Source of the DNA: Macrostomum hystrix
Lineage: Eukaryota; Animalia; Platyhelminthes
Assembly (NCBI GenBank): GCA_950097015.1
Contig: CATNEN010000025.1
Span: 5,580,001 to 5,644,000, forward strand
Length of the DNA: 64,000 bases
Direction of reading: 5' to 3'
The translations under genes were made by a program, and so were the position numbers. Under the pieces are notes generated by a model. The model was not told the DNA's origin. It saw only the letters and a list, made by a program, of their open reading frames with translations, and did not search any database. Positions 644 to 52,771 of this stretch are shown piece after piece; position 1 is the first letter of the stretch; each line of letters opens with the position of its first letter.

Positions 644-2566
644 GCGCTGCTGCTTTCAAATCAGCTCGCCGCTATCCAATCGGGTACGTCTTCGTCAGCC
701 GCATCCGGCTCTGTTGGCGAATCGCCGGCAGGTGGCGAACAGGCCACCGCCCTAGTTAGCCAGTCCTGGTCGCGACTGGATCCGGCTCTGCGGCAGCTGA
801 GTCCGACCGACTGTCCCCTGGTTCAGATGGGCTCGCTGCACGCCGCGCTTTACCTGCTGCAGTGCCGACCGCCGCCAAGCCAGGAGGCTCTGGCTCCGCT
901 AGTCAGCTTCCTCGAGGCCGAGGTGGGCAATTTGGCGCTGACAAACCGAAGATCGGAGCGGCTGGCGTTGCTGGCTCTGTCGGCTGCTTTTCAGGTGTGT
1001 TTGAGTTTGCAATTCTGAAGTTGGGAATCACCTTTGATCTCAAGCTGGGAATCCCCTTTGATCTCAAGCTGGGAATCCCCTTCTGATCTCAAGTTGGGAA
1101 TCCCCTTCTGATCTCGAGTTGGGAATCCCCTTTGATCTCAAGCTGGGAATCCCCTTCTGATCTCAAGTTGGTAATCCCTTCTGATCTCAAGTTGGGAATC
1201 CCCTTTGATCTCAAGCTGGGAATCCCCTTCTGATCTCAAGTTGGGAATCCCCTTCTGATCTCAAGTTGGGAATTCCCTTCTGATCTCAAGTTGGGAATCC
1301 CCTTCTGATCTCGAGTTGGGAATCCCCTTTGATCTCAAGCTGGGAATCCCCTTCTGATCTCAAGTTGGTAATCCCTTCTGATCTCAAGTTGGGAATTCCC
1401 TTTGATCTCAAGCTGGGAATCCCCTTCTGATCTCAAGTTGGGAATCCCCTTCTGATCTCGAGTTGGGAATCCCCTTCTGATCTCAAGTTGGGAATTCCCT
1501 TCTGATCCCAAGTTGGGAATCCTTTTCAGATCTTAATGTATATGTTTATTACTTATATTTCGAGCCTATCTTGGGAACTAAAAAATATTATCTTAATCTT
1601 CTTTCTTCCTCTTAGGTTGCTCCTCTCTACGATGACGTCACATCTGCTCTGGTTAGCGCCACAGCCAAGCTGTGCGCCAGTCCGCGCTTGAACTATTTTG
1701 TCCAGTCCTGTTGTTCGCATGGCTGGCAGCGTCTAGTTGAACAGGCGGCCGTGCCTCAGGCGGCGCTGCAGACTCTGATAGCCAAGGTGGCGCTGAGTCC
1801 TCGCGGACCCGGCCTGTGCCACCTGACGCCTAGCCTGGCCCTGCTCGTAGCCTCCCTGGCCAAGTGTCCGGAATCGGCGGCTCTGGAACGCGTCGACTCG
1901 GCCTGCAAACTGTTGGCCAAAGCCGCCGATCCGTCCGAGGGCCTGCTCTGGTCGCGCGCTCTGCCGCCACTCATGCTGAGACTGTTTGGCCGGCAGGCCG
2001 CTCTGAACAAGGCGCTTAACCTGTTTCTGACGGCTCCAATCGCATCGCTGCCCTGGTCGGCCGCCTTGCTATTTAACACTCTAGTCGCAGACTCTCTAGT
2101 GACTTTGTCGCCTTCCAACTCCGCGTTATCCGACGACGCTAGCATAAAATTAATCTCATCAGCGTCCTCTTCATCGTCTACATCGTCTCAACTGCTGACG
2201 GAGCTGGTGATGCCTTCGTTGTCGGCCCTGCTAGTCAAGCAGGCAAAGCCATGGCCGGCTCTGTGGGCCACCACCGTTGTCCTAGCCGCCCTGTGCCCAG
2301 ACGCTTGGCTGCGCGCCGCTGGAGCCGCCCTAGTCGAAGCCGGCCCGTCCGCTTCGGTTGTGTCCGTTGTTGGCCCGGCAACCAGGTCGCTTTTCGCCGC
2401 ATCGTCGCGTCGACTTGCCAGACGATTGTCGGCCGGCGATCCGGAGGGCCGGCGCGGTCTGGACGGCATCCTGCGCTCGCTGGTTGAACTGGCCCAGCAG
2501 AAGCCGGAAGAGGACGATCAGCAGGTTGGCCAATCGGCCGCTTCCGTGATGCGAGCTCTGAGCTGA
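644..2566 (+). CDS. HTT: Huntingtin-like protein, last two exons (644-994, 1616-2566); gene starts upstream of the window
   Basis: AG/GT-bounded exons join in phase 0. The translation tracks the huntingtin C-terminal HEAT region: QMGSLHAALYLLQC ~ RVGALHGVLYVLEC; HGWQRLV ~ RGLERLL; ALERVDSACKLL...SRALPPLMLRLFGRQAALNKALNLFL ~ AMERVSVLFDRI...[26 protein letters not shown]. Stop TGA at 2564-2566. Confidence 0.8.
1017..1525. repeat. Minisatellite, ~25-bp unit GATCTCAAGTTGGGAATCCCCTTCT (HTT last intron)
   Basis: Direct reading, ~20 copies. Confidence 0.95.
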
Positions 2567-3249
2567 CTTAAGTAGTGCTCTTTGTTCGTTAGACTCTTTG
2601 TTGACACGATTCCTGTAAAGATTATTTTGAGGATATTCAGGTTGGAGGCTTACCTTTTCCTTGTTTAGTTTGTTTTTTTCGGCCAGTTTTTCGGAGATTT
2701 CCCCTAGCCCCTGTATTTTAGAAGATATTTTCAAATACAAAACTCAGAATAAAATCGATAGTGTCTATCGCATAACTAGTTAATCACAATCGATCGTTAA
2801 TTGCTTTAACCTTCATTTCGCGTGTCACTCTCACTTAATCCCATGCCATTTGTCTGCCTGGCTGATTTTCTCAATCTTTTTCTCACTAGTTTTTCTCTTA
2901 ATCGTTTAAGTCGTTATTGTATACTACTTATGAAACTCAATGTATAAGTAGCTAATAAGTGCATGGTTATGTTCTATTTTTTCCTTCAAAAAATTGTTTC
3001 TGTTGTGAATGCGTAATCTATTAAATTAAGCGTACATTCCCAGTCTATTTTTTTAGATACAGACATCCTATCGGCATGCAAGAATACTTTTATTACGTAT
3101 ATAAGACTATTTTGCTTCGCCATCCGCTATGTACTTGAAATTCCTTTCCTTATTTAACAAGTTTTATAATTAAATATGAAATAATTTAGAGACGAAAAAT
3201 CTGCATGAAATCTTGCGTCGCAAAGTGACCCTCTCAATCTATTTAATGA

Positions 3250-4028
3250 ATGTAGGAGCCTCGACAAACCCCCAGCCACTCACCCTCGCTAATGTACGCA
3301 GGAGCCTTGACAAACCCCCAGCCACTCACTCTCGCTAATGTACGCAGGAGCCTTGACAAACCCCAAGCAACTCACCCTCGCTAATGTACGCAGGAGCCTT
3401 GACAAACCCCCAGCCACTCACTCTCGCTAATGTACGCAGGAGCCTTAACAAACCCCCCAGCCACTCACCCTCGCTAATGTACGCAGGATCCTTGACAAAC
3501 CCCCGCCACTCACCCTTGCTAATGTACGCAGGATCCTCGACAAACCCCCCAGCCACCCACCCTCGCTATGTACGCAGGATCCTCGACAATCCCCCAGCCA
3601 CTCACCCTCGCTAATGTACGCAGGATCCTCGACAAACCCCCCAGCCACTCACCCTCGCTATGTACGCAGGATCCTCGACAAACCCCCCAGCCACTCACCC
3701 TCGCTAATGTACGCAGGATCCTCGACAAACCCCCCAGCCACCCACCCTCGCTATGTACGCAGGATCCTTGACAATCCCCCAGCCACTCACCCTCGCTAAT
3801 GTACGCAGGATCCTCGACAAACCCCCCAGCCACCCACCCTCGCTATGTACGCAGGATCCTCGACAATCCCCCAGTCACTCACCCTTGCTAATGTACGCGG
3901 GATCCTCGACAATCCCCCCAGCCACTCACCCTTGCTAATGTACGCGGGATCCTCGACAATCCCCCCAGCCACTCACTCTCGCTAATGTACGCAGGATCCT
4001 CGACAAACCCCCAGCCTCTCACCCTCAA
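3250..4028. repeat. Minisatellite, 46-47-bp unit (HTT-MMD spacer)
   Basis: AATGTACGCAGGATCCTCGACAAACCCCCCAGCCACTCACCCTCGCT, ~16 copies. Confidence 0.95.
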
Positions 4029-4664
4029 CCCTTTAAATTAGTTGTATTTCTTAAAGTTCTAAAAAATCAAATCCAGAATTTTTTAAATTATGTTTTCCTT
4101 GTCAACATCGGTACGAAGCGATGTTTTAATAAATTGCATAGTATCCTTACTTATTACACCCTTCAGAGTATATAACTACCAATAATTGAAGCTCTGATTA
4201 TCGTTGATGTTACAGACTCGTCAAACCATTGATTAGTTTATGATAAACTATTATTTGTGTCTTCATAGTTTTCGTCATTATATCTGTGTTTTTTTTATAT
4301 TATTCATATTTATTTCAGTTTTTTAATAAACAATATGTTTTTTGTGAGGAAAATTAATATTTATCTTGCTTATTTCCATAAAATCTTTGTTATATTATAC
4401 TCGTACAACCTTGTTTAGTTCTAGAAAGAATTTTCACTGACAAAGACATAGACAAGAAAAAACTTTATCTCTTTTTCTATTACTAGAGTGACTACCCTAC
4501 TCTTATTAGTAGTGTAGTTAGCACAGAAAGCATTAAAAACAAAAATTGAAAATATATTTAAACGGATTTTTTTCAGCGACCTCCTACTGACTCTCAGTTG
4601 AAGGCCGACCTATCCCAATAACCAAAGATAATTGGTTCCAATTGCGGCTCCAACTCTTGTTGAC

Positions 4665-7600
4665 ATGGTTGGTCTTCAGAAACAGCTAGTTAAATCAGCT
4701 AGCCAACTGAATCTTGGCAGGTAATTTGTTCATTGTTTAGCTTCCTTCATTTGTTCATTTGTTCATTGTTTTGCTTCCCCATTTATAAATTTTTCAGGGT
4801 TCATGTTAAAATGCCCCTGATATTGTCTCTGAAATTGTCGATTGTCTGTCTTTTGTACGTCTTTAAAGTTGGTGTGGAACGAAAAACACAAGTAATGAAG
4901 AAAGCGCTGCTAAAAGGGGTGGCTGCGCCGCTGTGCGGTGCGGGCCTGAGATTTTCCGTGCTGGTCTTTATAAGCGTCTTAGCCAGAGGGCGATTGCTAT
5001 TGGCTGAGGGTTATCCGAGCTCTCTTATTGGCTGGATTGAAGTTGCGAACGGAAATTCCGCGGGTTTGCCGTAATAATGGTGAAAAAACCATGGGAAACT
5101 GGCCAATGCACAGAGGCTGGCGGACACTTTAAGATTCAAGTCTAGCTTGATAACCCACTGTAAATATGTACAGAAAATATAATGTTCCAGATCAATTATG
5201 CCTTTCTTGCACTACTTACAGAATAATTTTAAAAAACTTTAAAAGTTAATCAGCTCTCTTTTCCCTCTTTCGCATCAACACAACTTAACTAGCTGGAGCC
5301 TGCTTACCAAAATAAGCAAGGCTTTTGGTAAGAATTTACATTTTGGCAAATATTTGTATTTTTTCCTGGCTTCCCAATTCCTATTGTCCTACGTGATCAT
5401 TTGTTTTATTGCGTTGATTTTCTCTGCTTTTGTCATATTTTTAATCAAAAAAAGCGTTTTTTGGAGAAGATATCTTATGAATGGTTTTTTAAATCAGTTT
5501 AAATACCACAATTATAATTGTGTTTAGAAATTTTTTGATTTAACACAGCAGTTAATGGAAGATATCAAACCGTAAATTAGCGTAATCTTAAACTGTAAAT
5601 TGCCTATCCTTAATTGTACAATCAGCTAGACTCACCTAGTTACTAATTATGCATTTACTACCAACTTTGTGTTTCTATACTTTGTATAAGTTATTTTTCA
5701 ACAAGTCTATCCAGTATCTACACACCACTATATTTTACCCGTAATATTCCTGTAGTATACCTGGAACGTTTGTGACCTAAGCTCAACTGAAATCTGCGAC
5801 CTCCTGTCCTCTTCCCCAATCTACCTCTTACCTATAATCTGTCATCTGCCCACTCTACCCCACCTAGAATCTGTCATCTGCCCACTCTACCCCACTTAGA
5901 ATCTGTCATCTACCCACTCTACCCCACTTAGAATCTGTCATCTACCCACTCTACCCCACCTGCAATATGTCATCTACCCACTCTACCCCACCTACAATCT
6001 GTCATCTACCCACTCTACCCCACTTACAATCTGTCATCTACCCACTCTACCCCACCTACAATCTGTCATCTACCCACTCTACCCCACTTACAATCTGTCA
6101 TCTACCCACTCTACCCCACCTACAATCTGTCATCTACCCACTCTTACCCACCTACAATCTGTCATCTACCCACTCTACCCCACCTACAATCTGTCATCTA
6201 CCCACTCTACCCCACCTACAATCTGTCATCTACCCACTCTACCCCACCTAGAATCTGTCATCTACCCACTCTACCCCACCTAGAATCTGTCATCTACCCA
6301 CTCTACCCCACCTAGAATCTGTCATCTACCCACTCTACCCCACCTAGAATCTGTCATCTACCCACTCTACCCCACTTACAATCTGTCATCTACCCACTCT
6401 ACCCCACCTACAATCTGTCATCTACCCACTCTTACCCACCTAGAATCTGTCATCTACCCACTCTACCCCACCTAGAATCTGTCATCTACCCACTCTACCC
6501 CACCTAGAATCTGTCATCTACCCACTCTACCCCACCTAGAATCTGTCATCTACCCACTCTACCCCACCTACAATCTGTCATCTACCCACTCTACCCCACC
6601 TAGAATCTGTCATCTACCCACTCTACCCCACCTAGAATCTGTCATCTACCCACTCTACCCCACCTAGAATCTGTCATCTACCCACTCTACCCCACCTAGA
6701 ATCTGTCATCTACCCACTCCACTACCCAAAAAAAGGTTCAAGAACCAGCGCGCGAAGCCCGGCCAGCCGTACGTGCCCACCAGCCAGGAGCATGTGGCCA
6801 ATATTGTGTCGCACATATTCATGATACCGGCCACACTATATCGGATGTGGACTCTGCTAAGCCGTTGCTCGGACGGAACCCAGGCCGTCACATCCCTAAT
6901 CTATGGCATTGCCGGCGTCTGCTTATTTCTCATCTCGTCGCTGTTTCACTTGTTTGCCTTCCGCGGCGGGCCTTGGTTAGATTTTTTTCAAATATCGCTA
7001 CTTTCTACTTTCAGTAGGACAAGTCGTATACTCGTATTAAAATGTAATGCAATTGAAAAAATATTTTTAGCCTACTGAGAGAGATATTTCATAGAGGCGA
7101 TCGAGTCTTTATCTACATTTTTATCGCCGCCAGTTATACACCCTGGTAAGTGTGTCTGCTACTCAAAAATTTTTTTGCAGTCGACGAAAATCGATTTTAT
7201 CTTTTTGCAGGCTGGTGCTGCGAGATTTTGAATTCAACACGGGTATTAGGTGCATGTACGCTATCTGGTTTGCCGCTGTGTTGGGCATCACCTATCAGCT
7301 GATTTTCCACGAAAAGTAAGAAAATAACTTTCACCAAACATATACAGTATAAATATCAGCCACGGTCTGAAGATAGGACAGTCTAATATTTTTGTTAGCC
7401 CATCAAAGTGAGCCTGAAAATAAGGCAGATAATTAGGCTAGCTAATAAAATTGAGCCTATGGGATAGGCAGTAGATTATAATATCCCGGCCAATCAGAAG
7501 TGAGCCTTAGAATAGGGCGGTAGAAAATAATCGCCAGCCAATCAGAAGTGAGCCTTAGGATAGGGCGGTAGAAAATAATCGCCAGCCAATCAGAAGTGAG

Positions 7601-39200: not shown

Positions 39201-41551
39201 TTGTGATTCTTAGCTAGACTAATCTTGTACTTAATAATCATATCTTACTCGATATTCATATATGTTTCGATAGTCCTATCTGTACTCAATAATCCTATGT
39301 GTATTAAATAATCCTATCTGTGCTCGCTAATCCTATCTGTACTCAATGATTCTATCTGTTCTCAATAATCCTATCTATGCCTAATAATACTATCTGCACT
39401 TAGTAATCCTATCTGTACTCAATAATCCTATCTCTGCTCAATAATCCTATCTGTTCTTAAAAATCTTATCTGTGTTCGGTAATAATATCTGTTCTCGATA
39501 ATTCTTTCTGTTCTAAATAATCCTATCTGTTCTCAATAATACTGTCTATTCTCGATAATCCTTTCTGTGCTCAATAATTATATCTGTTCTCAATCATCCT
39601 ATCTGTGCTCAATAATCCTTTCTGTGCTCAATGACCCAACCTGTACTTAATAATCCTATCTGTACTCAATAACCCTACCCCTAGTGCTCAATAATCCTAT
39701 ATTTACTTAATTATCTTATATGTGCTCAATAATCATATTTTTATTCAACAATCCAATAGTTTCTAGATAATTAACTGTTCTTGATAATCCTATATGTGCT
39801 CAAGAATCCTGTCTGTGTTCAAGAAAACCACAAATATGTTTAAAAACCACACCTGTACTCAAGAACACCAACTATAATAAAGAAACACTCCTATACTTAA
39901 ATGCTGGTGTACTTAAGAACTTATAATATGGATAAAACCATCTCTACTAAAAACCTATCGTACCTAACAACCGTTTCGAAAAAGCCATCTCAATCTGTGC
40001 TCAAAAAACACCAGGAGGCCAACGGTCCGCCACCGGGTGCTCCCGTGTCTCCGCCGCCGCCGCTATTTCACACAGCTCCATTGAACTCTAATCAAGGCTA
40101 CACGGCAGTCGTGCTCACTAATCGCCATGACTTTGACACTCTCAGTAGAACTTTGAGCAGTCTTTTAACTGGTCATCGATTGGGATTGAGTCGACATCTA
40201 CGCAAGATTGTCATAGTGTGGAACGGGCAGAAGGCTGTGCCGCCTACGCTAACGTTAAGCAGTATTATGCCCTCTGTGCCGCCTGGTGTGACCCTCGAAA
40301 TCATTCGCAGCGGAGATAATCGTCTCACTAATCGATATTTGCCCTACGACGCTATTGAAACAGACGCTGTACTTTCCTTGGACGATAATTTTGATTCACT
40401 GCTTCCTGGTAAATTGTGTTCTGTTCTCTTATCTGTAGATGCTTAGATTCCTGTCTTTTTAGTTGTCTAAATCCCACAGTTAATTTCAGACTCCTGTATT
40501 CTACTCTCATATTGTGTTTACTTATTATGTCTGACTGCCGTCCGCGTATGGCTGACTCATGTCCGTAGATGTCTGACTCATGTCCGTAGATGTCTGACTC
40601 ATGTCCGTAGATGTCTGACTCATGTCCGTAGATGTCTGACTCATGTCCGTAGATGTCTGACTCATGTCCGTAGATGTCTGACTCATGTCCGTAGATGTCT
40701 GACTCATGTCCGTAGATTTTTGACTCATGTCTGCTGATGTTTGACATCTTCGTAGATGTTTGACATCTCAGTAGATGTTTGACATCTCAGTAGATGTCAG
40801 AAAACTTTCCATAGATGTCAGACTCATGTCCGTAGATGTTTTACAAGTCCGTCTGACTCATGCCCTTAGATGTCTGACTCATCTCCGTAGATGTCTGACT
40901 CATGTACGTAGATGGCATACCACTTTCTGTAGATGTCTAACTCCTGTCCGTGGATGTCTAATTATCATTCTTGTGTATCTAACTCCTGTCTATAGATGTT
41001 TAGCTGCTATCTATCTAGATGTCAAACATTCATCCTTAGTCACAAGTATATAGTAATTCTCCCATTCCGTTATTAAAGGTGAGCTTCTCCTGGCCTATCA
41101 CGTTTGGCTAGAGAATCCAGACTGCATCGTTGGCTTTCCGCCAGTTCTTCGCAATCACTCCCTTGGAGGGTACTCAGAAGAACTGTCTATGGTACTAACC
41201 AGCGCGGCATTCTATCACAAGCAGTACGGCGCCCTATTTCACGACACCCTGCCTGTAGATCTCATCGACTATATCGACTCAATTGGCGACTGTGAAGATA
41301 TCGCAATGAACTGTCTAGTAGCTAACCTCACTGGCAAGGGTCCAATCAAAGTTGGTCCGCGTCTAAAGTTCCCTAGCAACCGTAGCAGCCGGCCCAGATC
41401 TGCTTGCCTAACGGTTGTTAAACGACACTTTGGCATCGCGGCCCTGCCAGTGCAGCCTGTGGCTTTCAGAGCGGACCCCGTGTTATTTAAGACGGCCTAC
41501 GCTAACTGGTCAGCCAATGCCGACTATGCCGACTTAGATGGCATTCTGTGA
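36234..41551 (+). CDS. EXT2: Exostosin-2-like heparan sulfate polymerase subunit, 708 aa; exons 36234-36923, 38598-39167, 40015-40408, 41079-41551
   Basis: N-terminal TM anchor. Motifs CTYHACFDIDAC, SPYYTADPSRACVFLPDID, LQVLNDRVFPY, NRLTNRYLPYDAIETDAVL, SMVLTSAAFYHK and CEDIAMNCLVAN match EXT2. Exon phases join to 2127 nt. Confidence 0.9.
36965..38545. repeat. Minisatellite, 20-bp unit GGTAGAAAACAGAACAGGAT and variants (EXT2 intron 1)
   Basis: Fills almost the whole intron. Confidence 0.95.
39230..39890. repeat. Degenerate ~20-bp minisatellite AATAATCCTATCTGTGCTC (EXT2 intron 2)
   Basis: Direct reading; old and diverged. Confidence 0.85.
40545..41030. repeat. Minisatellite, 21-bp unit ATGTCCGTAGATGTCTGACTC (EXT2 intron 3)
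   Basis: Perfect core with degenerate 3' part. Confidence 0.92.
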
Positions 41552-41689
41552 TCACTTGCTCAGCCTCATTCACTGTCTGTCTGTTTTTTACTGTCTGTTG
41601 TATCTTACAGATAGTAGCAGCAGAACTCTATTTTAGAGTTCTGTTATTATTCTGATATGAAATATGAATATAATATGCTGTCATATTCT

Positions 41690-41995
41690 GTTTTCTTACT
41701 GTCTTGTTCTGTCTTCTTGCTGTCCTGTTCTGTCTTCTTACTGTCCTGTTCTGTCTTCTTGCTGTCATGTTCTGTCTTCTTGCTGTCATGTTCTGTCTTC
41801 TTGCTGTCATGTTCTGTCTTCTTGCTGTCCTGTTCTGTCTTCTTGCTGTCCTGTTCTGTCTTCTTGCTGTCATGTTCTGTCTTCTTGCTGTCATGTTCTG
41901 TCTTCTTGCTGTCATGTTCTGTCTTCTTGCTGTCATGTTCTGTTTTCTTACTGTCCTGTTCTGTCTTCCTGCCGTCATGTTCTGTCTTCTTTCTG
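41690..41995. repeat. Minisatellite, 21-bp unit TGTCATGTTCTGTCTTCTTGC (3' of EXT2)
   Basis: Direct reading. Confidence 0.93.
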
Positions 41996-42344
41996 TATTC
42001 CATTGTCTTAATTAGTATTTTTTTGTTTTGTTCTGTACTCTCTCTAGTTCAGTTAAATCACACTGTACTAAATTGATATCCTAATTATGGATCAATTTTT
42101 GTTTCAGGTGTGTTTGTCTCTCTTTCTGTTAAAGAGAATTTTTGCAAGTTTTTGTAGAACATCTTCCATTAATTGTCCTCTTACCCGACCTGTCTTTCTG
42201 CCTTGTCTACTATGAGCGTGTACAATAATTGTAATTAATACTTATTAGCAATTAAATGCATGTGCGAGACAATTCACAAACTGTATTAATTTTATTTCTG
42301 TTACTCTATTGGCACATGCTTATTACGTCACAACGAACACTTAA

Positions 42345-42654
42345 TTATAACAATTATTATAATTCCGGGGGCTGGGGGCAATGGCACATCATTTAGTGGC
42401 ACTAGACCCACAAGCTGCGAGGAGGCAGTTCTGCCCATTTCGTTGACTCCTGAGCACACGCTCACACAGTTGTGTACATCTGCCCTGACATTCTCATCGT
42501 CAGGCAGTGTACACTTCACTGTGCCTTGGAGGGAGCCCCCAAGCCTTCTCTCCGCGACTGCGCCCCAAATGAATGTGGCCTCGCCGCGGAATCGAGCTCA
42601 GGGACCTCGGTGCGAGAGGCAAACGCGTTAGACCGCGCTGCCACAGACGGCCCC
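42345..42654 (-). mobile_element. tRNA-derived SINE family 2
   Basis: Head GGCCGTCTGTGGCAGCGCGGTCTAACGCG...GAGCTCGATTCC on the - strand; AT-rich tail; body homologous to 44779-44995 in the opposite orientation. Confidence 0.65.
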
Positions 42655-42849
42655 ACTAGTCATAGTAATAGTAATATACGCAATCGTAATAATATTCACA
42701 CGAGGACTGCGTATACTTGATTATCTTGTGTACAAGTGAATCCGCAGCCAGATCCCATTCCACGGATTCGAGCTCAGGGACCTTAGTATATACTACTGTT
42801 ACTGGATAAGTAGTACTGTTAGCTCCTAATCAAATTAATTTTCAGCCAG

Positions 42850-45800
42850 ATGACAGCTAAGGGCAGCAGTCGGACCGTTAGGCTTCGACAGGCCTTTTTT
42901 CCAAACGCCGACGACGATGGCGACGCATCAGCCGGCACCAGCGGCTGTGTTCTCCGACTAGCCGGTCCATGTGAGTCGTTGGCATTCGCCATCGACCTAC
43001 TGCTAGACTATCAGGCCGATGCGGACGCCGCTATTGAGGCAGCCAGTCATTTGACCGACTTACTCGCCATCGCCTCGCCGTCGACGTCGGCTCGCGGGGC
43101 TGCAACTCTGGCGGCTCTGCTTAGTCGAAAGCAGGCGTGTCGATTAGCATTCGCCGATCGTCCCGATCTGCTAGTTGCCCTGCTGGACCGTCTGCTGCTG
43201 CCTGACTGCGAAGGAAGCAGCGATGGCGATAGCGCAAATGTTGGCGAAGACGCCGAGGAGACTCTCCGACTGTCGGCAGTCGTATTGTGCCACGTCAGCC
43301 AATCGGAGCGCGGCTGTTTGGCTATCTGGCGCTGCGGTCGACTGTCTGGAAGGTGACCGTCTATGTTAACCCTAAAAAGGGCCGATTTAAATTGACAAAT
43401 TAAACTTAAGTTTAGACAAGCTACTATCATTTTCAAATACCCAAATTATTCCTTTCTTTCTGAATCTTACAAAATATTCAACGAGTCGCAATGAAAATCC
43501 GAAACAGAAGCAAAAATTTTTCATCTAGAATCACAAGGCATTAGCATCGTCGAGATATTCAGCGATTCTCGTCGGAGTGTCTGATGGCAAAAACCACCAA
43601 TATAGGCGGCGGGTATTTGAATACCCCCGTGATCTGTCTACTGTTTAGTATTTTTAACTCGGTACACAGGTCGCCAACGGCCGCCCTGCTGTCGGCTCTG
43701 ACACATCCGCCGGCATTGGCTCACGCTTTGACCTGCCTCCGGCGACTGTTGGCCAGCGTGCCGGAGTCGCGCCGCAGCGCCCGGCCCGGGCTGGCTCTAC
43801 TAGCCGGCCTGCTGGGCCTGGCCGATCGGCGACTGCTGGCCGCCGCCGCCGACTGTCTGCAACTGCTGGCGTTCGGTAAGAGTGGTGGGACAATTGGAAC
43901 TACTGTACAATGTCATCGTCTATTTGGTTGGCTTAACAGAACACATTGTGCCCTTTTACGACGACTTGAAGGTCGGTGGTTCGATTCCCGACTCTACCTG
44001 ACCAATTTTTGTCTTTTGGCAAGACACTTAACTCTGCGTTGCTTCAGTTCACCCAGCTGTTGAATGGGTGCAAGCATTAGAGTAATTGTGGGTGGGTGTA
44101 GCGTCCCCCCAGTCCATGGACTGAACAGCCGTACGCAGCCTTCAGATGCGCCGCGCAATAGCTGCAACCAATTGAAGTAGTTATTATACCATGAAAACAC
44201 ATTGAAAAAATTGTTTCGGTACATTGTTTTCTTACAAGTTGCTATTTAAATAACTTTACTGGTAACCTAGGCAAATTCCACCATAATTAGTATTACTGCT
44301 ATTGAATGTTTTCACCTCTTAGCCTAAAATAATAAGCTATCGGCATCTATTAATGACCCCACAGACACAACAACGCACTCAACATAGACTTAACCTCGTG
44401 TTAATAAATTCCAAACGTAATGCTTTGTCAAGGCGACCCCGAGACAAAACGTCGCCTGCTTGAACTCGACGTGCAAAGTCGTCTAGCCGACCTCCTTCGT
44501 CGGCCGTACTCTCGCAACGATGACCAAACTGATGAAGCTTCGGCGAGCATCGACGAAAATTTGCTAGTTGCGGTCGCGCGTCTCATTCGCTCCCTCACGG
44601 TGGAACCCGTTGGCAAGTCGGCCGCCATACGCGCCGGCTGCTTTGAAGCTCTGGCTGCTTACGCCGCTTCTGACGGCGCCACTCAGCGACTGCTGCTCAG
44701 CTGCCTGTGGCCTCTGCGCAATCTCAGCAACTGCTGCTGCTTTGAAGGCTCCCTTGCTTCCGGTGAGTTTCGGGGTGAGTGGCAGAGCGGACCAACGGTG
44801 AACAGTGAGAGTGTACACTGCCTGACGATGAGAAAGTCAGGGCAGATGTACAAACCTGTGTGAGCTTGTGCCTGCGTACAGTATCTGTGTGCGTGTGTGC
44901 TCAGGAGTCAGCGAAATGACAGCAGAATTGCCTCCCCGCTGGCTGTGGGTCTAGTATCCCCGAATGATGTGCCATTGTCCGCAGCCCTCCTGAAAATTAA
45001 TTTTTTTTTCCAGTGAGTCCTAGGATTCGAACTTGCCAATATCCTCAATCATCCATTCAGACTGCATCATGAACCTTCTGGCTCGCCTGACTCGCCTGCT
45101 GGCCTCCGAGGATGCGGACACGGCCACCTGTTCCGCCGGCCTGTTGTGCAACCTCACCTGCGGCAGTCGGCCCTGCAAAATGGCCGTTGTTGAAGCCGGC
45201 GGTGCCGCCGCTTTGACAATCGCTTTAGTAGCGTCAACGGCTGCCACTGGATTTCGGGAAGAATTCGCCGAACCGTTGGTGTGCGCTCTGCGTCACGTGA
45301 CGAGTGATCATTCGCTGGTTAGTTTTTATTAATGTTTTTGTTCTCATTTATGTAAGTAAATAAAAAATATTCTGTTTCGATCCATGAAATCCAAGATGAG
45401 ATCTAAACCAATCTCACATGAGATCTAACCCAATCTCACATGAGATCTAACCCAAAGTCACATGAGATCTAAACTAATCTCACATTAGATCTAACCCAAT
45501 CTCATATGAGATCTAACCCATCTCACATGAGATCTAACCCAATCTCACATGAAATCTAGCCCAATCTCACATGAGATCTAACCGAATCTCACATACAATA
45601 TCAATAAAACCTTAAATGAAATCAATGAAATCCTTGAGATCAGGGAAATCTGACATGAGATGAAACCGAATCACTGATGAGATGGATTCTCATTCTCACG
45701 TGTGATTATATCAAAGCCAATTAAATTATTAATTTTTTTCTAATAAAGGCCAACAAAGCTGCCGAGGAATTCTTTGCACACCGCGGGTCGGCTGCGTTGC

Positions 45801-48800
45801 ATCGCCTACTGAATGGCGAGGTCGGCCGCAATAGCTGCTCAAAGCTCTGCGGCAAGCCACTACTGAAGGCCATCCTAGGCCTCTGCCACAATATGGCCTG
45901 CCTCGGCAATCGCTGGCGAGCCGTTCTCATCGACAGTCGCCTCGCCGACTCGGCCGCTGTTGCAGTTCGTCGAGAAGCCGACTATTATAATCCCGGCCCG
46001 TCTTCAACCCTAATTGATGCTGACTGCGGCGTCAGCCCTGAAGAGGTTCAAGAGGTCGGATTGGCCTGCCTGACGGCGCTGGCGGTGATGCCAAAGTCGG
46101 GCAGTTCAACATTTGCAGCGTCGACTGCGTCTAGGAATCTGTCGTTGTCGGCTGCTTCGCCAGATTTTCTAGCCGCTCTGGCAAGCCTGATGCGCTCCAA
46201 GAGACTGTCGGTGGCAAGCGGAGCCGCAGAGCTGCTCGACCGACTGCGCTCAGCTTCGGCTTCTGCTGCTGCCGCCGCCGTTGCTTCTCCCCCATTGATG
46301 TCGCCGTCCGCATCGTCAGCCGTTGCTTGTTCTTCTGACAGCCGTAGTCGTCTAGTCGATAGTACAGGTCATCATCGGAAACCATATACGACTCGTTCGT
46401 CTGGCTGGGAGTACTGCGGCGTCGGGCATCGGCGTGACAGTAAGTTCCGGTTTGATTACTCACATCAGATAGTTTTGAGTTTAGATCGTGTCAGCTCAAA
46501 TCGTGTCAGTTTAGATCGTGTCAGTTCAGATTGTGTCAGTTCAGATTGTGTCAGCTTGGGTCGCGTCAGTTCAGATCGTGTCAGTTCAGATCGTGTCAGC
46601 TCAGATCGTGTCAGTTCAGATCGTTTCAAACTGTGTCAGTTCAGATTGTGTCAGCTTGGGTCGCGTCAGTTCAGATCGTGTCTGTCCAGATCGTGTCCGT
46701 TTAGATTGTGTCAGTTCAGATTTTGTCAGTTCAGATTGTGTCAGCTTGGGTCGCGTCAGTTCAGATCGTGTCAGTTCAGATCGTGTCAGTTCAGATCGTG
46801 TCAGTTCAGATCGTGTCAACTTGGGTCGTGTCAGTTTAGATCGTGTCCGTTTTGTTTATGTCAGTTCAGATTGTGTCAGTTCAGATTGTGTCAGTTCAGA
46901 TTGTGTCAGTTCAGATCGTGTCAGTTCAGATTGTGTCAGTTCAGATTGTGTCAGTTCAGATCGTGTCAGTTCAGATCGTGTCAGTTCAGATCGTGTCAGT
47001 TCAGATCGTGTCAGTTCAGATCGTGTCAGTTCAGATCGTGTCAGTTCAGATCGTGTCAACTTGGGTCGTGTCAGTTCAGATCGTGTCAGTTCAAATCGTG
47101 TCAGTTCAGATCGTGTCAGTTCAAATCGTGTCAGTTCAGATCGTGTCATTTTAGATTTGTCCTTTATACAGTTATATCTTCAATGTTTATTTCCTATCGA
47201 TAAACAGTTTTGGCCATTAATAGCAGAACTAGTCAGATTAGATTTGGTCTCATTTGCCAGTCTCATTCAAATGATAGATTCATGTTATTCTGCTTATCGA
47301 ATGGACGCCAAATTGGTCTTGACGTTACAAATAATGGCAGCAAATGAAGTCCCAAATTGATACGAATTTGCAAAAGCAAATTCAAGCAAAAGGCTAAGAT
47401 TCTATTTCAAATTCAGCCAGATAGGGTTGCCTTAATAAAACTTCAACCACCATATTCATCGCTCAATCCTTTCCTTTCAACATTTTAAGCTTCCGATGTA
47501 TTGATTTGATTGCCTATTAAGTGAAACAGGTGAAACTTTCTTATCAGGATATCATGATTGTTCAATTAGAATCTTTTGTCATTCTCCGTATTCCGCATGC
47601 GTGCAATAGTTGCAGATTCATGATTTGCAGCACAGTGTAATGCACAGATTTCCCTAATTCAACACTCTAATCGGATTGTATGCTCTTTAAAATCCTTCAA
47701 ATATTTCATCTCCTTTCAGACTTCCATCCCCTTCAAATCTCCTATCCCCTTCAATCCCTTCAAATCTTCCACCCCCTTCAAATCTTCCACCCCCTTCAAA
47801 TCTTCCATCCCCTTCAATCCCTTCAAATCTTCCACCCCCTTCAAATCTTCCACCCCCTTCAAATCTTCCACCCCCCTTTAAATCTTCCACCCCTTCAAAT
47901 CTTCCACCCTCTTCAAAGCTTCCACCCCTTCAAATCTTCCACCCCCTTCAAATCTTCCACCCCCTTCAAATCTTCCATCCCCTTCAATCCCTTCAAATCT
48001 TCCACCCCCTTCAAATCTTCCACCCCCTTCAAATCTTCCACCCCTTCAAATCTTCCACCCTCTTCAAAGCTTCCACCCCTTCAAATCTCCCATCCCCTTC
48101 AAATCTTCCACCCCTTCAAATCTTCCACCCTCTTCAAATCTTCCACCCCCTTCAAATCTCCCACCCCCTTCAAATCTCCCATCCCCTTCAAATCTCCCAT
48201 CCCCTTCCATCCCTTCAAATCTTCCACCCCCTTCAAATCTTCCACCCCCTTCAAATCTCCCATCCCCTTCAAATCTTCCACCCCTTCAAATCTTCCACCC
48301 CCTTCAAATCTTCCACCCCCTTCAAATCTCCCATCCCCTTCAAATCTTCCACCCCTTCAAATCTTCCACCCCCTTCAAATCTTCCACCCCCTTCAAATCT
48401 CCCATCCCCTTCAAATCTCCCATCCCCTTCCATCCCTTCAAATCTTCCACCCCCTTCAAATCTTCCACCCCCTTCAAATCTTCCACCCCCTTCAAATCTC
48501 CCACCCCCTTCAAATCTTCCACCCTCTTCAAATCTTCCACCCCCTTCAAATCTTCCACCCCCTTCAAATCTCCCACCCACTTCAAATCTCCCACCCTCTT
48601 CAAATCTTCCACCCCCTTTAAATCTTCCACCCCTTCAAATCTTCCACCCTCTTCAAAGCTTCCACCCCTTCAAATCTTCCACCCCCTTCAAATCTTCCAC
48701 CCCCTTCAAATCTTCCATCCCCTTCAATCCCTTCAAATCTTCCACCCCCTTCAAATCTTCCACCCCCTTCAAATCTTCCACCCCTTCAAATCTTCCACCC

Positions 48801-51800
48801 TCTTCAAAGCTTCCACCCCTTCAAATCTCCCATCCCCTTCAAATCTTCCACCCCTTCAAATCTTCCACCCTCTTCAAATCTTCCACCCCCTTCAAATCTC
48901 CCACCCCCTTCAAATCTCCCACCCCCTTCAAATCTCCCATCCCCTTCCATCCCTTCAAATCTTCCACCCCCTTCAAATCTTCCACCCCCTTCAAATCTCC
49001 CATCCCCTTCAAATCTTCCACCCCTTCAAATCTTCCACCCCCTTCAAATCTTCCACCCCCTTCAAATCTCCCATCCCCTTCAAATCTTCCACCCCTTCAA
49101 ATCTTCCACCCCCTTCAAATCTTCCACCCCCTTCAAATCTCCCATCCCCTTCAAATCTCCCATCCCCTTCCATCCCTTCAAATCTTCCACCCCCTTCAAA
49201 TCTTCCACCCCCTTCAAATCTTCCACCCCCTTCAAATCTTCCACCCCCTTCAAATCTCCCACCCCCTTCAAATCTTCCACCCTCTTCAAATCTTCCACCC
49301 CCTTCAAATCTTCCACCCCCTTCAAATCTCCCACCCACTTCAAATCTCCCACCCTCTTCAAATCTTCCACCCCCTTCAAATCTTCCATCCCCTTCAAATC
49401 TTCCACCCCCTTCAAATCTCCCACCCCCTTCAAATCTCCCATCCCCTTCAAATCTCCCATCCCCTTCCATCCCTTCAAATCTTCCACCCCCTTCAAATCT
49501 TCCACCCCCTTCAAATCTCCCATCCCCTTCAAATCTTTCACCCCTTCAAATCTTCCACCCTCTTCAAATCTTCCACCCCCTTCAAACCTCCCCCCCCCTT
49601 CAAATCTCCCACCCTCTTCAAATCTTCTACCCCCTTCAAATCTTCCATCCCCTTCAAATCTTCCACCCCCTTCAAATCTCCCACCCCCTTCAAATCTCCC
49701 ACCCTCTTCAAATCTCCCATCCCCTTCAAATCTTCCACCCTCTTCAAATCTTCCACCCCCTTCAAATCTTCCTCCCCTTCAAATCTTCCACCCTCTTCAA
49801 ATCTTTCATCCCTTAAAATCTTTCATCCCTTCAAATCTCCCACCCCCTTCAAATCTTCTATCCCTTCAAATCTTCCACCCCTTCAAATCTTTCATCCCTT
49901 CAAATCTTCCATCCCTTAAAATCTTCCATCCCTTCAAATCTTCCACCCTCTTCAAATCTTTCATCCCTTAAAATCTTTCATCCCTTCAAATCTTCCACCC
50001 CCTTCAAATCTTCTATCCCTTCAAATCTTCATCCCCTTCAAATCTTTCATCCCTTCAAATCTTCCATCCCTTCAAATCTTCCATCCCTTCAAATCTTCCA
50101 CCCCTTCAAATCTTCCACCCCCTTCAAATCTTCCACCCCCTTAAAATCTTTCATCCCTTCAAATCTTCCACCCCCTTCAAATCTTCTATCCCTTCAAATC
50201 TTCATCCCCTTCAAATCTTTCATCCCTTCAAATCTTCCATCCCTTCAAATCTTCCATCCCTTCAAATCTTCCACCCCTTCAAATCTTCCACCCCCTTCAA
50301 ATCTTCCACCCCCTTCAAATCTTTCATCCCTTCAAATCTTCCACCCCTTAAAATCTTCCACCCCTTCAAATCTTCCACCCCCTTCAAATCTTCCACCCCC
50401 TTCAAATCTTTCATCCCTTCAAATCTTCCATCTCTTCAAATCTTCCACCCCTTTAAATCTTCCACCCCCTTCAAATCTTCCACCCCCTTCAAATCTTCCA
50501 CCCCCTTCAAATCTTCCACTCCCTTTAAATCTTCCACCCCCTTCAAATCTTCCATCCCTTCAAATCTTCCACCCCCTTCAAATCTTCCATCCCTTCAAAT
50601 CTTCCACCCTCTTCAAATCTTCCACCCTCTTCAAATCTTCCACCCTCTTCAAATCTTCCATCCCTTCAAATCTTCCACCCCCTTTAAATCTTCCATCCCT
50701 TCAAATCTTCCACCCCCTTCAAATCTCCCATCCCCTTCAAATCTTCTATCCCTTCAAATCTTCATCCCCTTCAAATCTTTCATCCCTTCAAATCTTCCAT
50801 CCCTTCAAATCTTCCATCCCTTCAAATCTTCCACCCCTTCAAATCTTCCACCCCCTTCAAATCTTCCACCCCCTTAAAATCTTTCATCCCTTCAAATCTT
50901 CCACCCCCTTCAAATCTTCTATCCCTTCAAATCTTCATCCCCTTCAAATCTTTCATCCCTTCAAATCTTCCATCCCTTCAAATCTTCCATCCCTTCAAAT
51001 CTTCCACCCCTTCAAATCTTCCACCCCCTTCAAATCTTCATCCCCTTCAAATCTTTCATCCCTTCAAATCTTCCATCCCTTCAAATCTTCCATCCCTTCA
51101 AATCTTCCACCCCCTTCAAATCTTCCACCCCCTTCAAATCTTTCATCCCTTCAAATCTTCCATCTCTTCAAATCTTCCACCCCTTTAAATCTTCCACCCC
51201 CTTCAAATCTTCCACCCCCTTCAAATCTTCCACCCCCTTCAAATCTTCCACTCCCTTTAAATCTTCCACCCCCTTCAAATCTTCCATCCCTTCAAATCTT
51301 CCACCCCCTTCAAATCTTCCATCCCTTCAAATCTTCCACCCTCTTCAAATCTTCCACCCTCTTCAAATCTTCCACCCTCTTCAAATCTTCCATCCCTTCA
51401 AATCTTCCACCCCCTTCAAATCTTCCATCCCTTCAAATCTTCCACCCCCTTCAAATCTTCCATCCCTTCAAATCTTCCACCCCCTTCAAATCTTCCACCC
51501 CCTTCAAATCTTTCATCCCTTCAAATCTTCCATCTCTTCAAATCTTCCACCCCTTTAAATCTTCCACCCCCTTCAAATCTTCCACCCCCTTCAAATCTTC
51601 CACCCCCTTCAAATCTTCCACTCCCTTTAAATCTTCCACCCCCTTCAAATCTTCCATCCCTTTAAATCTTCCATCCCTTCAAATCTTCCACCCCCTTCAA
51701 ATCTTCCATCCCTTTAAATCTTCCACCCCCTTCAAATCTTCCATCCCTTCAAATCTTCCACCCTCTTCAAATCTTCCATCCCTTCAAATCTTCCACCCTC

Positions 51801-52771
51801 TTCACATCTGCTTATTCAGTTTCTGGCCATAATATAATGGCTCTAGAAATTTCAAGTAATTTTGAATTTGTTTCATGTAATAAATATTGTATTACTTTTA
51901 TCATTGCACGCTGTGTACTGAAGTAAGTGACAGAATCTATAAGTAAAATATTGGTATATAATGAGCGTTTATTAAGTTTTCTAGTCCAAAACTTTAAATT
52001 TTCATAAAATACTGAAAAGAGAGGGTTGTAGACTAGTGTTTCGGCTCAAGACTTGAAGGTCGGGGGTTCGATTCTCGACTACACAAGAACAATCTGTGTC
52101 CTTTAGCAAGACACTTAACTCTGCTTGGCTTCAGTTCACCCAGCTGTTAAATAGGTACCAGCATCAGCTGGGGTAATTGAGGCTGGGTGTGGCGTCCCCC
52201 CAGTCCATGGACTGAACAGCCGTACGCTGCCTTCAGAGGCGCCGCACAATAGTTGCGGCTGTGCTGTCGGCTGCACATCTGACCCAATTAGTGCTGGCGT
52301 AATCAATTATTGTTACTATCATTCAAATGCTTCATCGGAAGGGATTTTCCATGAAAAGTATTATAAACAATCCTTATAGCAGACTGAATCATCATTTTTT
52401 AATGAAAATCTACTATGCGTACATATTTACATGATTTCACTCGATCAACTGGTCAATTATTTTGCTTAAGCTGCGCTAAGCACGTGACTCTTAAAATTGA
52501 TTTATATATAGTTAAATCAACTAATAGCATTACTAAAAGCTGGCTTTTAATTTTCAAGTTTTTTGTTAAAATTGTAGCTCAATGCAGCAGCGGCAGCACT
52601 AGCGATAAAATCACGGATTTTTCTTCTCTGGCCAGCTATTTCAAAGGCCAGAGCAGCAGTTTCAATCGTTGCACTCTGCGCTGCTGCCAGGCTCAGCAGA
52701 GGCGCCAGTATGCTTACAGCTATCGGCAGCAGGCTTGTTGGACTGCGACTACTCTAGGCAATGGACATTAG
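42850..52771 (+). CDS. CTNNB1-like: Divergent beta-catenin/armadillo-family protein; exons 42850-43352, 43670-43875, 44433-44762, 45061-45317, 45749-46439, and probably 52578-52771
   Basis: RLRQAFFP ~ RVRAAMFP; [22 protein letters not shown] ~ [22 protein letters not shown]; [14 protein letters not shown] ~ DCLQILAYGNQESK; CLWPLRNLS; [10 protein letters not shown]; [12 protein letters not shown]. Phases join throughout. The last exon is supported only by phase-1 compatibility across a 6.1-kb intron, so it is less certain. Confidence 0.85.
43962..44170 (+). mobile_element. SINE family 1 copy (beta-catenin-like intron 2)
   Basis: Same B-box and CORE-like block; palindrome at 44110-44123. Confidence 0.78.
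44779..44995 (+). mobile_element. SINE family 2 partial copy (beta-catenin-like intron 3)
   Basis: AGTGTACACTGCCTGACGATGAGAA..TCAGGGCAGATGTACA..TGTGGGTCTAGT..ATGATGTGCCATTG is the reverse complement of blocks in 42375-42510. Confidence 0.65.
45395..45595. repeat. Minisatellite, 22-bp unit CATGAGATCTAACCCAATCTCA (beta-catenin-like intron 4)
   Basis: Direct reading, ~9 copies. Confidence 0.9.
46475..47150. repeat. Minisatellite, 15-bp unit TCAGTTCAGATCGTG
   Basis: Direct reading; starts about 35 nt after the donor at 46440. Confidence 0.95.
47700..51805. repeat. Large ~4.1-kb satellite, 17-18-bp unit CCCCTTCAAATCTTCCAC
   Basis: Direct reading; strongly pyrimidine/C-rich on +; block duplication at a 740-bp offset. 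Confidence 0.97.
52025..52320 (+). mobile_element. SINE family 1 copy (in last beta-catenin-like intron)
   Basis: GGTTCGATTCTC B-box; GCAAGACACTTAACTCT..CTTCAGTTCACCCAGCTGTTAAAT resembles the MIR CORE; palindrome at 52201-52214. Confidence 0.8.

Follow-up and report, generated by a model that had tools for sequence, protein, structure and literature searches.

A divergent third beta-catenin gene of Macrostomum hystrix without N-terminal degron region and C-terminal activation region

We analyzed a stretch of 64,000 nucleotides from the assembly of the flatworm Macrostomum hystrix (C25:5580001-5644000, hereafter the window) which carries a beta-catenin gene on the plus strand at positions 42846-52771. 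The genome searched comprises 42 contigs with 220,453,370 bases, and we aligned RNA contigs of four public runs, all belonging to a single 2020 study, to the window stretch 41000-46900. The gene is expressed, has six exons and encodes a protein of 726 amino acids. Stop-to-stop translation gives five open blocks on the plus strand, and the accepted coding sequence runs as an unbroken open reading frame of 726 codons from the ATG at 42850 to the TAG at 52769-52771. The aligned contigs show GT..AG joints and are therefore derived from RNA. After shifting of the cuts these joints lie at 43352/43670, 43875/44433, 44762/45061 and 45317/45749; the four introns confirmed in this way have canonical splice sites and preserve the reading frame. 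A first-pass annotation, made from the letters of the window, had placed a beta-catenin paralogue at 42850-52771. RNA joints, reading frame and the orthologue from Macrostomum lignano described below bear out that the gene is real and that these coordinates are right.

For the assignment of the exons we used phmmer exon by exon against PDB chains; the chain index plus one corresponds to the human numbering, as checked on N426 and K435. Searches as well as fold and complex predictions were made with single exons or with the M. lignano orthologue (P0034), and the joined 726-residue model was used for alignment, dN/dS (nonsynonymous to synonymous substitution rates) and tree. Exon 1 (42846-43352, coding from 42850, with GT donor and RNA joint) encodes a remnant alpha-catenin-binding helix and ARM repeats 1-2 and matches zebrafish beta-catenin 88-199 (E 8e-7). 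Exon 2 (43670-43875, RNA joints on both sides) encodes ARM3-4 including the pocket changes F253A, H260R and F293L and matches residues 238-308 (E 7e-4). Exon 3 (44433-44762, RNA joints) covers ARM5-7 and, by alignment, contains K312, K345R, K354, W383/R386/N387 and a Cys-rich insert; it matches residues 333-392 (E about 1e-5). The best-conserved exon is exon 4 (45061-45317, RNA joints), which covers ARM7-8 with N426, K435 and R469/H470 and matches residues 397-475 (E 2e-22). The matches of exons 1-4 are collinear with beta-catenin 88-475. Exon 5 (45749-46439), which gave nothing significant against the PDB chains, is assigned by RNA joints and alignment to ARM9-11 with K508, followed by low-complexity Ala/Ser sequence, and ends in a conserved motif and a GTAAGT donor.

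Two RNA contigs leave exon 5 after position 46439, before this donor, and continue with 273 and 283 further letters. None of these is found within 46440-46900, thus a sixth exon must lie further 3′. The terminal open reading frame has a single AT-rich acceptor of compatible phase, at 52578. Exon 6, with a coding part of 64 codons followed by the TAG (52578-52771, plus strand), was accepted because of this acceptor, because its tail is shared with the M. lignano orthologue and because of the unplaced contig letters. The intervening intron 5 (46440-52577, plus strand) measures 6.1 kb, is filled with a 15-bp array (46478-47156) and an 18-bp array (47756-51809), and the contigs do not enter its first part (46440-46900).

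The window gene is a highly divergent, very fast-evolving third beta-catenin paralogue. Its nearest protein relatives are all from M. lignano, and a word-index protein search with exon 1 returned a single M. lignano fragment. A Pfam scan of the single exons yielded a sub-threshold Arm match on exon 4 only. Two further beta-catenin genes are present in M. hystrix, type A on C33 (4423197 onward; L008/L010) and type B on C3 (L007/L009), with the M. lignano orthologues P0003 (type A, with helix C) and P0002 (type B). A maximum-likelihood tree unites the three Macrostomum types in one clade (100/100), within which the window type and type B are sisters (100/99); Macrostomum is the only flatworm in this tree, which includes no planarian sequences and has to cope with biased composition and a long branch. 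A further candidate, P0005, was set aside because it is a fragment of canonical type and stems from an unrelated run. In the accessible literature we found no description of the window paralogue. Hall et al. (2024) used one common double-stranded RNA against "all three homologs", which suggests that near-identical copies were targeted and not the gene described here.

The orthologue in M. lignano is BOX15_Mlig034493g1 (P0034), annotated as "hypothetical protein, partial". It agrees with the M. hystrix gene in its six exons, its start, its tail and its neighbors. The order EXT / beta-catenin / FUN14 / amidase is kept between the species, and the M. lignano EXT neighbor contains the Exostosin_GT47 and Glyco_transf_64 domains. 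Identity between the two proteins is 64%, based on 626 aligned residues; relative to P0034 the M. hystrix copy is shorter by 27 residues in ARM5 and by about 16 in the ARM10-11 region. According to the method of Nei and Gojobori dN is 0.28 and dS is 1.45, giving an overall omega of about 0.19, a rough value as dS is near saturation; for the groove exons omega is about 0.09 (exon 3) and about 0.13 (exon 4). The gene is therefore under constraint.

Upstream of the beta-catenin gene lies an EXT2-like gene on the same strand. Its last coding exon and 3′ end are found at 41189-41588 (open reading frame with the stop at 41551). The RNA contigs of three runs stop at 41588, those of one run at 41734. 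This 3′ end bounds the room for any upstream beta-catenin exon: from the end of the EXT2 transcript to the beta-catenin gene there are only 1.1-1.26 kb, and about 0.7 kb of the stretch 41588-42846 are repeats. An old M. lignano gene model (P0004) fuses the EXT2 and beta-catenin genes.

At the 5′ end of the beta-catenin gene the genomic sequence reads aattaattttCAG, directly followed by CCAG ATG. The splice acceptor TTTCAG (42840-42845, plus strand) thus ends four nucleotides (nt) before the start codon, and here the RNA contig X2-rec9 departs from the genome; it matches from 42845 and carries another 23 letters which have no placement on 41000-42844. This acceptor is a probable site of spliced-leader trans-splicing. 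A spliced leader of 35 nt and the acceptor motif [T/C]TNCAG have been published for M. lignano and Macrostomum, respectively (PMC8629364). The 35-nt leader occurs 149 times in the M. hystrix genome with at most three mismatches, at least 23 of the copies being exact, and about 20% of the M. hystrix genes are trans-spliced (PMC10468722). TTTCAG as well as CTGCAG, the acceptor in M. lignano, match the motif. The leader ends in ...GCATG, and its final G accounts for the one base (42845) which is aligned before the cut. A trans-spliced transcript would read ...TTGCATG/CCAGATGACAGC at 42846, and with the leader received at 42840-42845 no upstream coding exon would be left. With the leader attached the leader AUG is out of frame in M. 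hystrix (MPDDS and then a stop), and the first in-frame AUG is the one at 42850. For M. lignano, attachment of the leader would place its AUG in frame and extend the protein by MPAS; the orthologue model begins with ASMPACGSRAARLQQAFFP, 6-9 nt 5′ of the homologous Met, at CTGCAG/CCAGCCAGC ATG. The start Met and the acceptor directly 5′ of it are hence common to both species. If the beta-catenin gene is indeed trans-spliced, EXT2 and beta-catenin would form an operon pair by the criterion of PMC8629364 (repeat-adjusted gap about 540 nt).

The first-pass annotation had stated that the reading frame starts at vertebrate residue 86-88 and that an exon encoding the DSGxxS degron is missing between the EXT2 stop and 42850. 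Both observations stand. According to phmmer the start of exon 1 corresponds to human residue 83-88, the equivalent of M88. No D[ST]Gxx[ST] motif is present between the EXT2 stop (41551) and 42850, the RNA 5′ end coincides with the acceptor, and the start is the same across species. A blastn comparison of M. hystrix and M. lignano from the EXT2 stop to the ATG revealed two similar parts only, one at the EXT2 end and one starting with the ATG, with no block between. Two motif matches were rejected. DSGMSS at about 32600 is a chance match: about 1.6 matches are expected over the scanned region, the surrounding frame contains stops, and the site lies 10 kb upstream, beyond the EXT2 exons. DSGKDS upstream of the M. 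lignano gene is the translation of a 20-bp microsatellite.

The absence of the degron is, however, not special to the window copy. Types A and B of both Macrostomum species are equally devoid of a D[ST]Gxx[ST] motif. For type A the conservation between M. hystrix and M. lignano starts at the ATG, and nothing is conserved back to the upstream gene; its N-terminus begins with MASYEVRQYTTTT... and has a Thr/Ser cluster which may be a remnant of GSK3/CK1 sites. Degron loss is thus genus-wide in Macrostomum. What sets the window copy apart is the absence of the full N-terminal tail combined with the loss of the C-terminal end.

The ligand groove was reported as intact in the first-pass annotation, and nearly all of its residues are indeed kept: K312 (DPETK), K354, R376, W383/R386/N387 (CLWPLRNLS), N426, K435 (RPCKM), R469, H470 and K508. 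Only for K345 does this not hold, as it is conservatively replaced by Arg. R515 is His in M. hystrix only. The Axin/TCF-helix pocket is altered at several positions (F253A, H260R, K292R, F293L, K335N, W338V) and so is the BCL9 knob (D162I, D164S); N261 is replaced by Arg. Within the alpha-catenin helix (118-146) V122, R124, L125, A126, P128, L132 and Y142 are kept, and T120G and many other positions are changed. In the model of the orthologue this helix (residues 30-52) has low confidence with a block-mean predicted local distance difference test (pLDDT) score of about 40-58. A Cys-rich insert in the ARM6/7 loop (window 44730-44762; P0034 residues 305-316) is identical in both species and absent from all other aligned beta-catenins.

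For the fold we used the AlphaFold2 model of the orthologue P0034 as stand-in for the M. hystrix protein. The confidently modelled part begins near residue 40 and ends at 564; residues 565-648 are disordered with pLDDT below 40. The best 50 Foldseek matches are all beta-catenin or plakoglobin. With VIA, model residues 62-565 align with human 151-629 (Z 30.0, root-mean-square deviation 4.0, 451 residues aligned). This fold match and the collinear phmmer matches of the exons corroborate the assignment as a beta-catenin paralogue. Since the structural alignment stops near residue 629 and the rest is disordered, going by this model ARM1-11 are present, and ARM12, helix C as well as the activation tail are absent. 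The protein is thus predicted to fold as ARM repeats 1-11 with a disordered tail, without ARM12, helix C and transactivation region. The sequence past ARM11 is of low complexity (Ala/Ser), and the alignment of the window protein contains no helix-C sequence, which paralogue A retains. The claim that Y654 is replaced by Gly finds no support: ARM12 is missing or unalignable, and in this column MAFFT places Ala, not Tyr. The proposed TLGNGH end without a DTDL-type PDZ motif is upheld by the phase of the acceptor at 52578, the M. lignano tail, which ends ...AYSYRMASCSTTGNRH before the stop, and the 273-283 contig letters beyond 46439. The C-terminal WTATTL is similar to the ancestral W[YF]DTDL, and GNGH follows; therefore a free PDZ ligand is not present.

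On the side of the possible ligands, classical cadherin beta-catenin-binding domains (PF01049) are found at four loci of the M. hystrix genome (C39:7938707, C3:5400457, C37:2566379 and C41:976983). Three of them score 54-58 bits and the fourth barely passes the cut-off (24.6 vs 24). A complex prediction of P0034:40-565 with an M. hystrix classical cadherin tail (L018:1372-1701:-) scored 0.02, which gives no answer and is evidence neither way. The Pfam profile CTNNB1_binding (TCF N-terminus) found nothing in the whole genome nor in the controls and is hence uninformative.

Compared with canonical beta-catenin/Armadillo (CTNNB1), to which all best sequence and fold matches belong, the window protein shares the ARM superhelix, the repeat order, the K312/K435 buttons and the groove ladder. 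In contrast to CTNNB1 it starts at about residue 88 and thus lacks residues 34-87, DSGxxS and the CK1/GSK3 sites; it has an altered BCL9 knob and Axin pocket, 11 instead of 12 repeats, and neither helix C nor transactivation tail nor a free DTDL end. Engineered deltaN87-90 beta-catenin is stabilised, keeps ARM12, helix C and the activation tail and is a strong activator. The window protein starts at a nearly identical residue, and loss of destruction-complex control would be expected for it as well, but it is devoid of ARM12, helix C and the activation tail. Nematodes have likewise divided the beta-catenin functions among divergent lineage-specific paralogues (HMP-2, BAR-1, WRM-1 and SYS-1), of which HMP-2 is found among the sequence and fold matches; their duplications are, however, independent.

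As precedent the first-pass annotation had cited truncated planarian paralogues that act as inhibitors. Such inhibitors do exist. Smed-beta-catenin3/4 are without the C-terminal transactivation domain, keep the surface binding Wnt components and compete with beta-catenin-1 (Su et al. 2017, PMC5643146). Their truncation is C-terminal, though, and not N-terminal: they retain the N-terminal GSK3 sites (PMC5643146). The window protein is similar to them as a natural flatworm paralogue without C-terminal transactivation domain and differs by the absence of any N-terminal tail; moreover, the Macrostomum copies group together in our tree.

We suggest that the window protein is stable and insensitive to Wnt and serves as competitor, buffer or scaffold, acting through its groove only and not as gene activator. 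This is in our view the best explanation of the sequence features, and we hold it with about even confidence. Without the CK1/GSK3/beta-TrCP region and the Axin-contact pocket the protein would escape the control by the destruction complex; the independence from this complex proposed at first is thereby plausible, given the missing degron and the pocket changes F253A, H260R, F293L, K335N and W338V. As it has neither BCL9 knob nor C-terminal activation module, no transcriptional activation would be expected of it. The other half of that proposal, a constitutive activator, is consequently unlikely, as ARM12, helix C, the C-terminal transactivation tail and D162/D164 are all missing. Since K312 and K435, the charged buttons, as well as the ladder of Asn, Arg, His and Trp residues in ARM5-9 are kept under purifying selection, extended acidic peptides would most likely still be bound; candidate ligands are TCF, cadherin tails and APC-like repeats. 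A role as TCF competitor, which had also been considered, is possible. For Arm/beta-catenin, region 34-87, which the window protein lacks, has been reported to promote nuclear translocation via IFT140 (PMC11311196). More speculatively, and with clearly lower confidence, the doubly truncated protein could be a constitutive, Wnt-blind decoy which sets the beta-catenin/TCF threshold or the occupancy of cadherin and APC, in a genus whose three beta-catenins all lack a DSGxxS motif; beta-catenin turnover in Macrostomum would then be under non-canonical control.

Several observations weigh against a groove-only competitor or against details on which it builds. The loss of F253/F293 and the changes at K335/W338 could weaken TCF binding as well. 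The 23 letters of X2-rec9 5′ of the acceptor were not read, so that the spliced leader is inferred, and exon 6 lies outside the read-covered stretch, its joint 46439/52578 resting on phase and orthologue. The stem branch of the window type amounts to 2.31 substitutions per site in the maximum-likelihood tree, full-length P0034 matches no Pfam family at E 0.01 (paralogues A and B do match), and the lineage-specific motifs, that is, the Cys-rich insert and the end of exon 5, are conserved between the species. The branch length and the conserved motifs would equally fit a neofunctionalised ARM scaffold outside the Wnt and cadherin systems, whose groove and new motifs serve lineage-specific partners. 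The missing Arm match speaks for such a scaffold too, as do the many altered classical partner sites. We nevertheless consider it doubtful, because the residues that have stayed invariant are precisely the classical ligand ladder (K312, K435, N426, W383/R386/N387, R469/H470, K508). Somewhat less probable still is a beta-catenin for adhesion only, similar to planarian beta-catenin-2, which links classical cadherins to alpha-catenin and has no need for a degron. The intact groove, the partly kept alpha-catenin helix (V122, R124-A126, P128, L132, Y142) and the three to four classical cadherin tails in the genome agree with it; but T120G and many further helix positions are changed, the cadherin-contacting ARM12 and Y654 region is absent, and paralogues A and B retain the adhesion features better.

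Two other explanations are very improbable. The 23 unplaced letters of X2-rec9 could be the 3′ end of a cis-spliced upstream exon with a normal degron N-terminus. Such a hidden exon is unlikely because the Met and its adjoining acceptor are kept in two species at 64% protein identity, because the acceptor matches the spliced-leader motif with the leader-final G fitting the extra aligned base 42845, and because neither conserved sequence nor a degron motif is found between EXT2 and the ATG. In addition, the EXT2 transcript on the same strand ends just 1.1-1.26 kb upstream, and the M. lignano annotation has the same start. Equally far-fetched appears a decaying, functionless duplicate which is transcribed as passenger of the EXT2 unit, some 1.26 kb away on the same strand. 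The low contig depth of about 5-9 and the high divergence would be compatible with decay, but the reading frame of 726 codons is intact, each of the five introns is either spliced correctly or conserved, the M. lignano orthologue is intact with the same structure, and omega is about 0.19 even if dS is near saturation.

The division of beta-catenin into specialised copies has happened repeatedly in flatworms, and the C-terminally truncated planarian copies are natural Wnt inhibitors. If the window protein is a groove-only competitor, the loss of both the degradation end and the activation end from a protein whose groove stays under selection would add a new solution to the kind represented by the planarian inhibitors. 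M. lignano is a model for transgenesis and RNA interference, so the competitor hypothesis is directly approachable. Three Macrostomum beta-catenins without DSGxxS also raise the question how Wnt controls beta-catenin levels in an early-branching flatworm lineage.

Copies of a dispersed repeat lie at 42369-42772 (+), 43955-44151, 44762-44987 (-) and 52136-52306 and have a summed RNA-contig depth of 1,200-6,800. A scan of the copies within 42300-45000 for tRNA found none; the repeat may be an element similar to short interspersed nuclear elements (SINEs). Two inverted copies flank exons 1-3 and are complementary over 62 nt (94%) and 66 nt (82%). In intron 5 the array at 47756-51809 extends over 4 kb, which is most of the intron, and consists of about 234 copies of the 18-bp unit CCCTTCAAATCTTCCACC with a GC skew near -1. 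In intron 5 of the M. lignano gene (L015:13450-15063) the end of exon 5 is repeated in tandem, with more than 25 copies of 45 bp, and in M. hystrix their place is taken by the unrelated 15-bp and 18-bp arrays.

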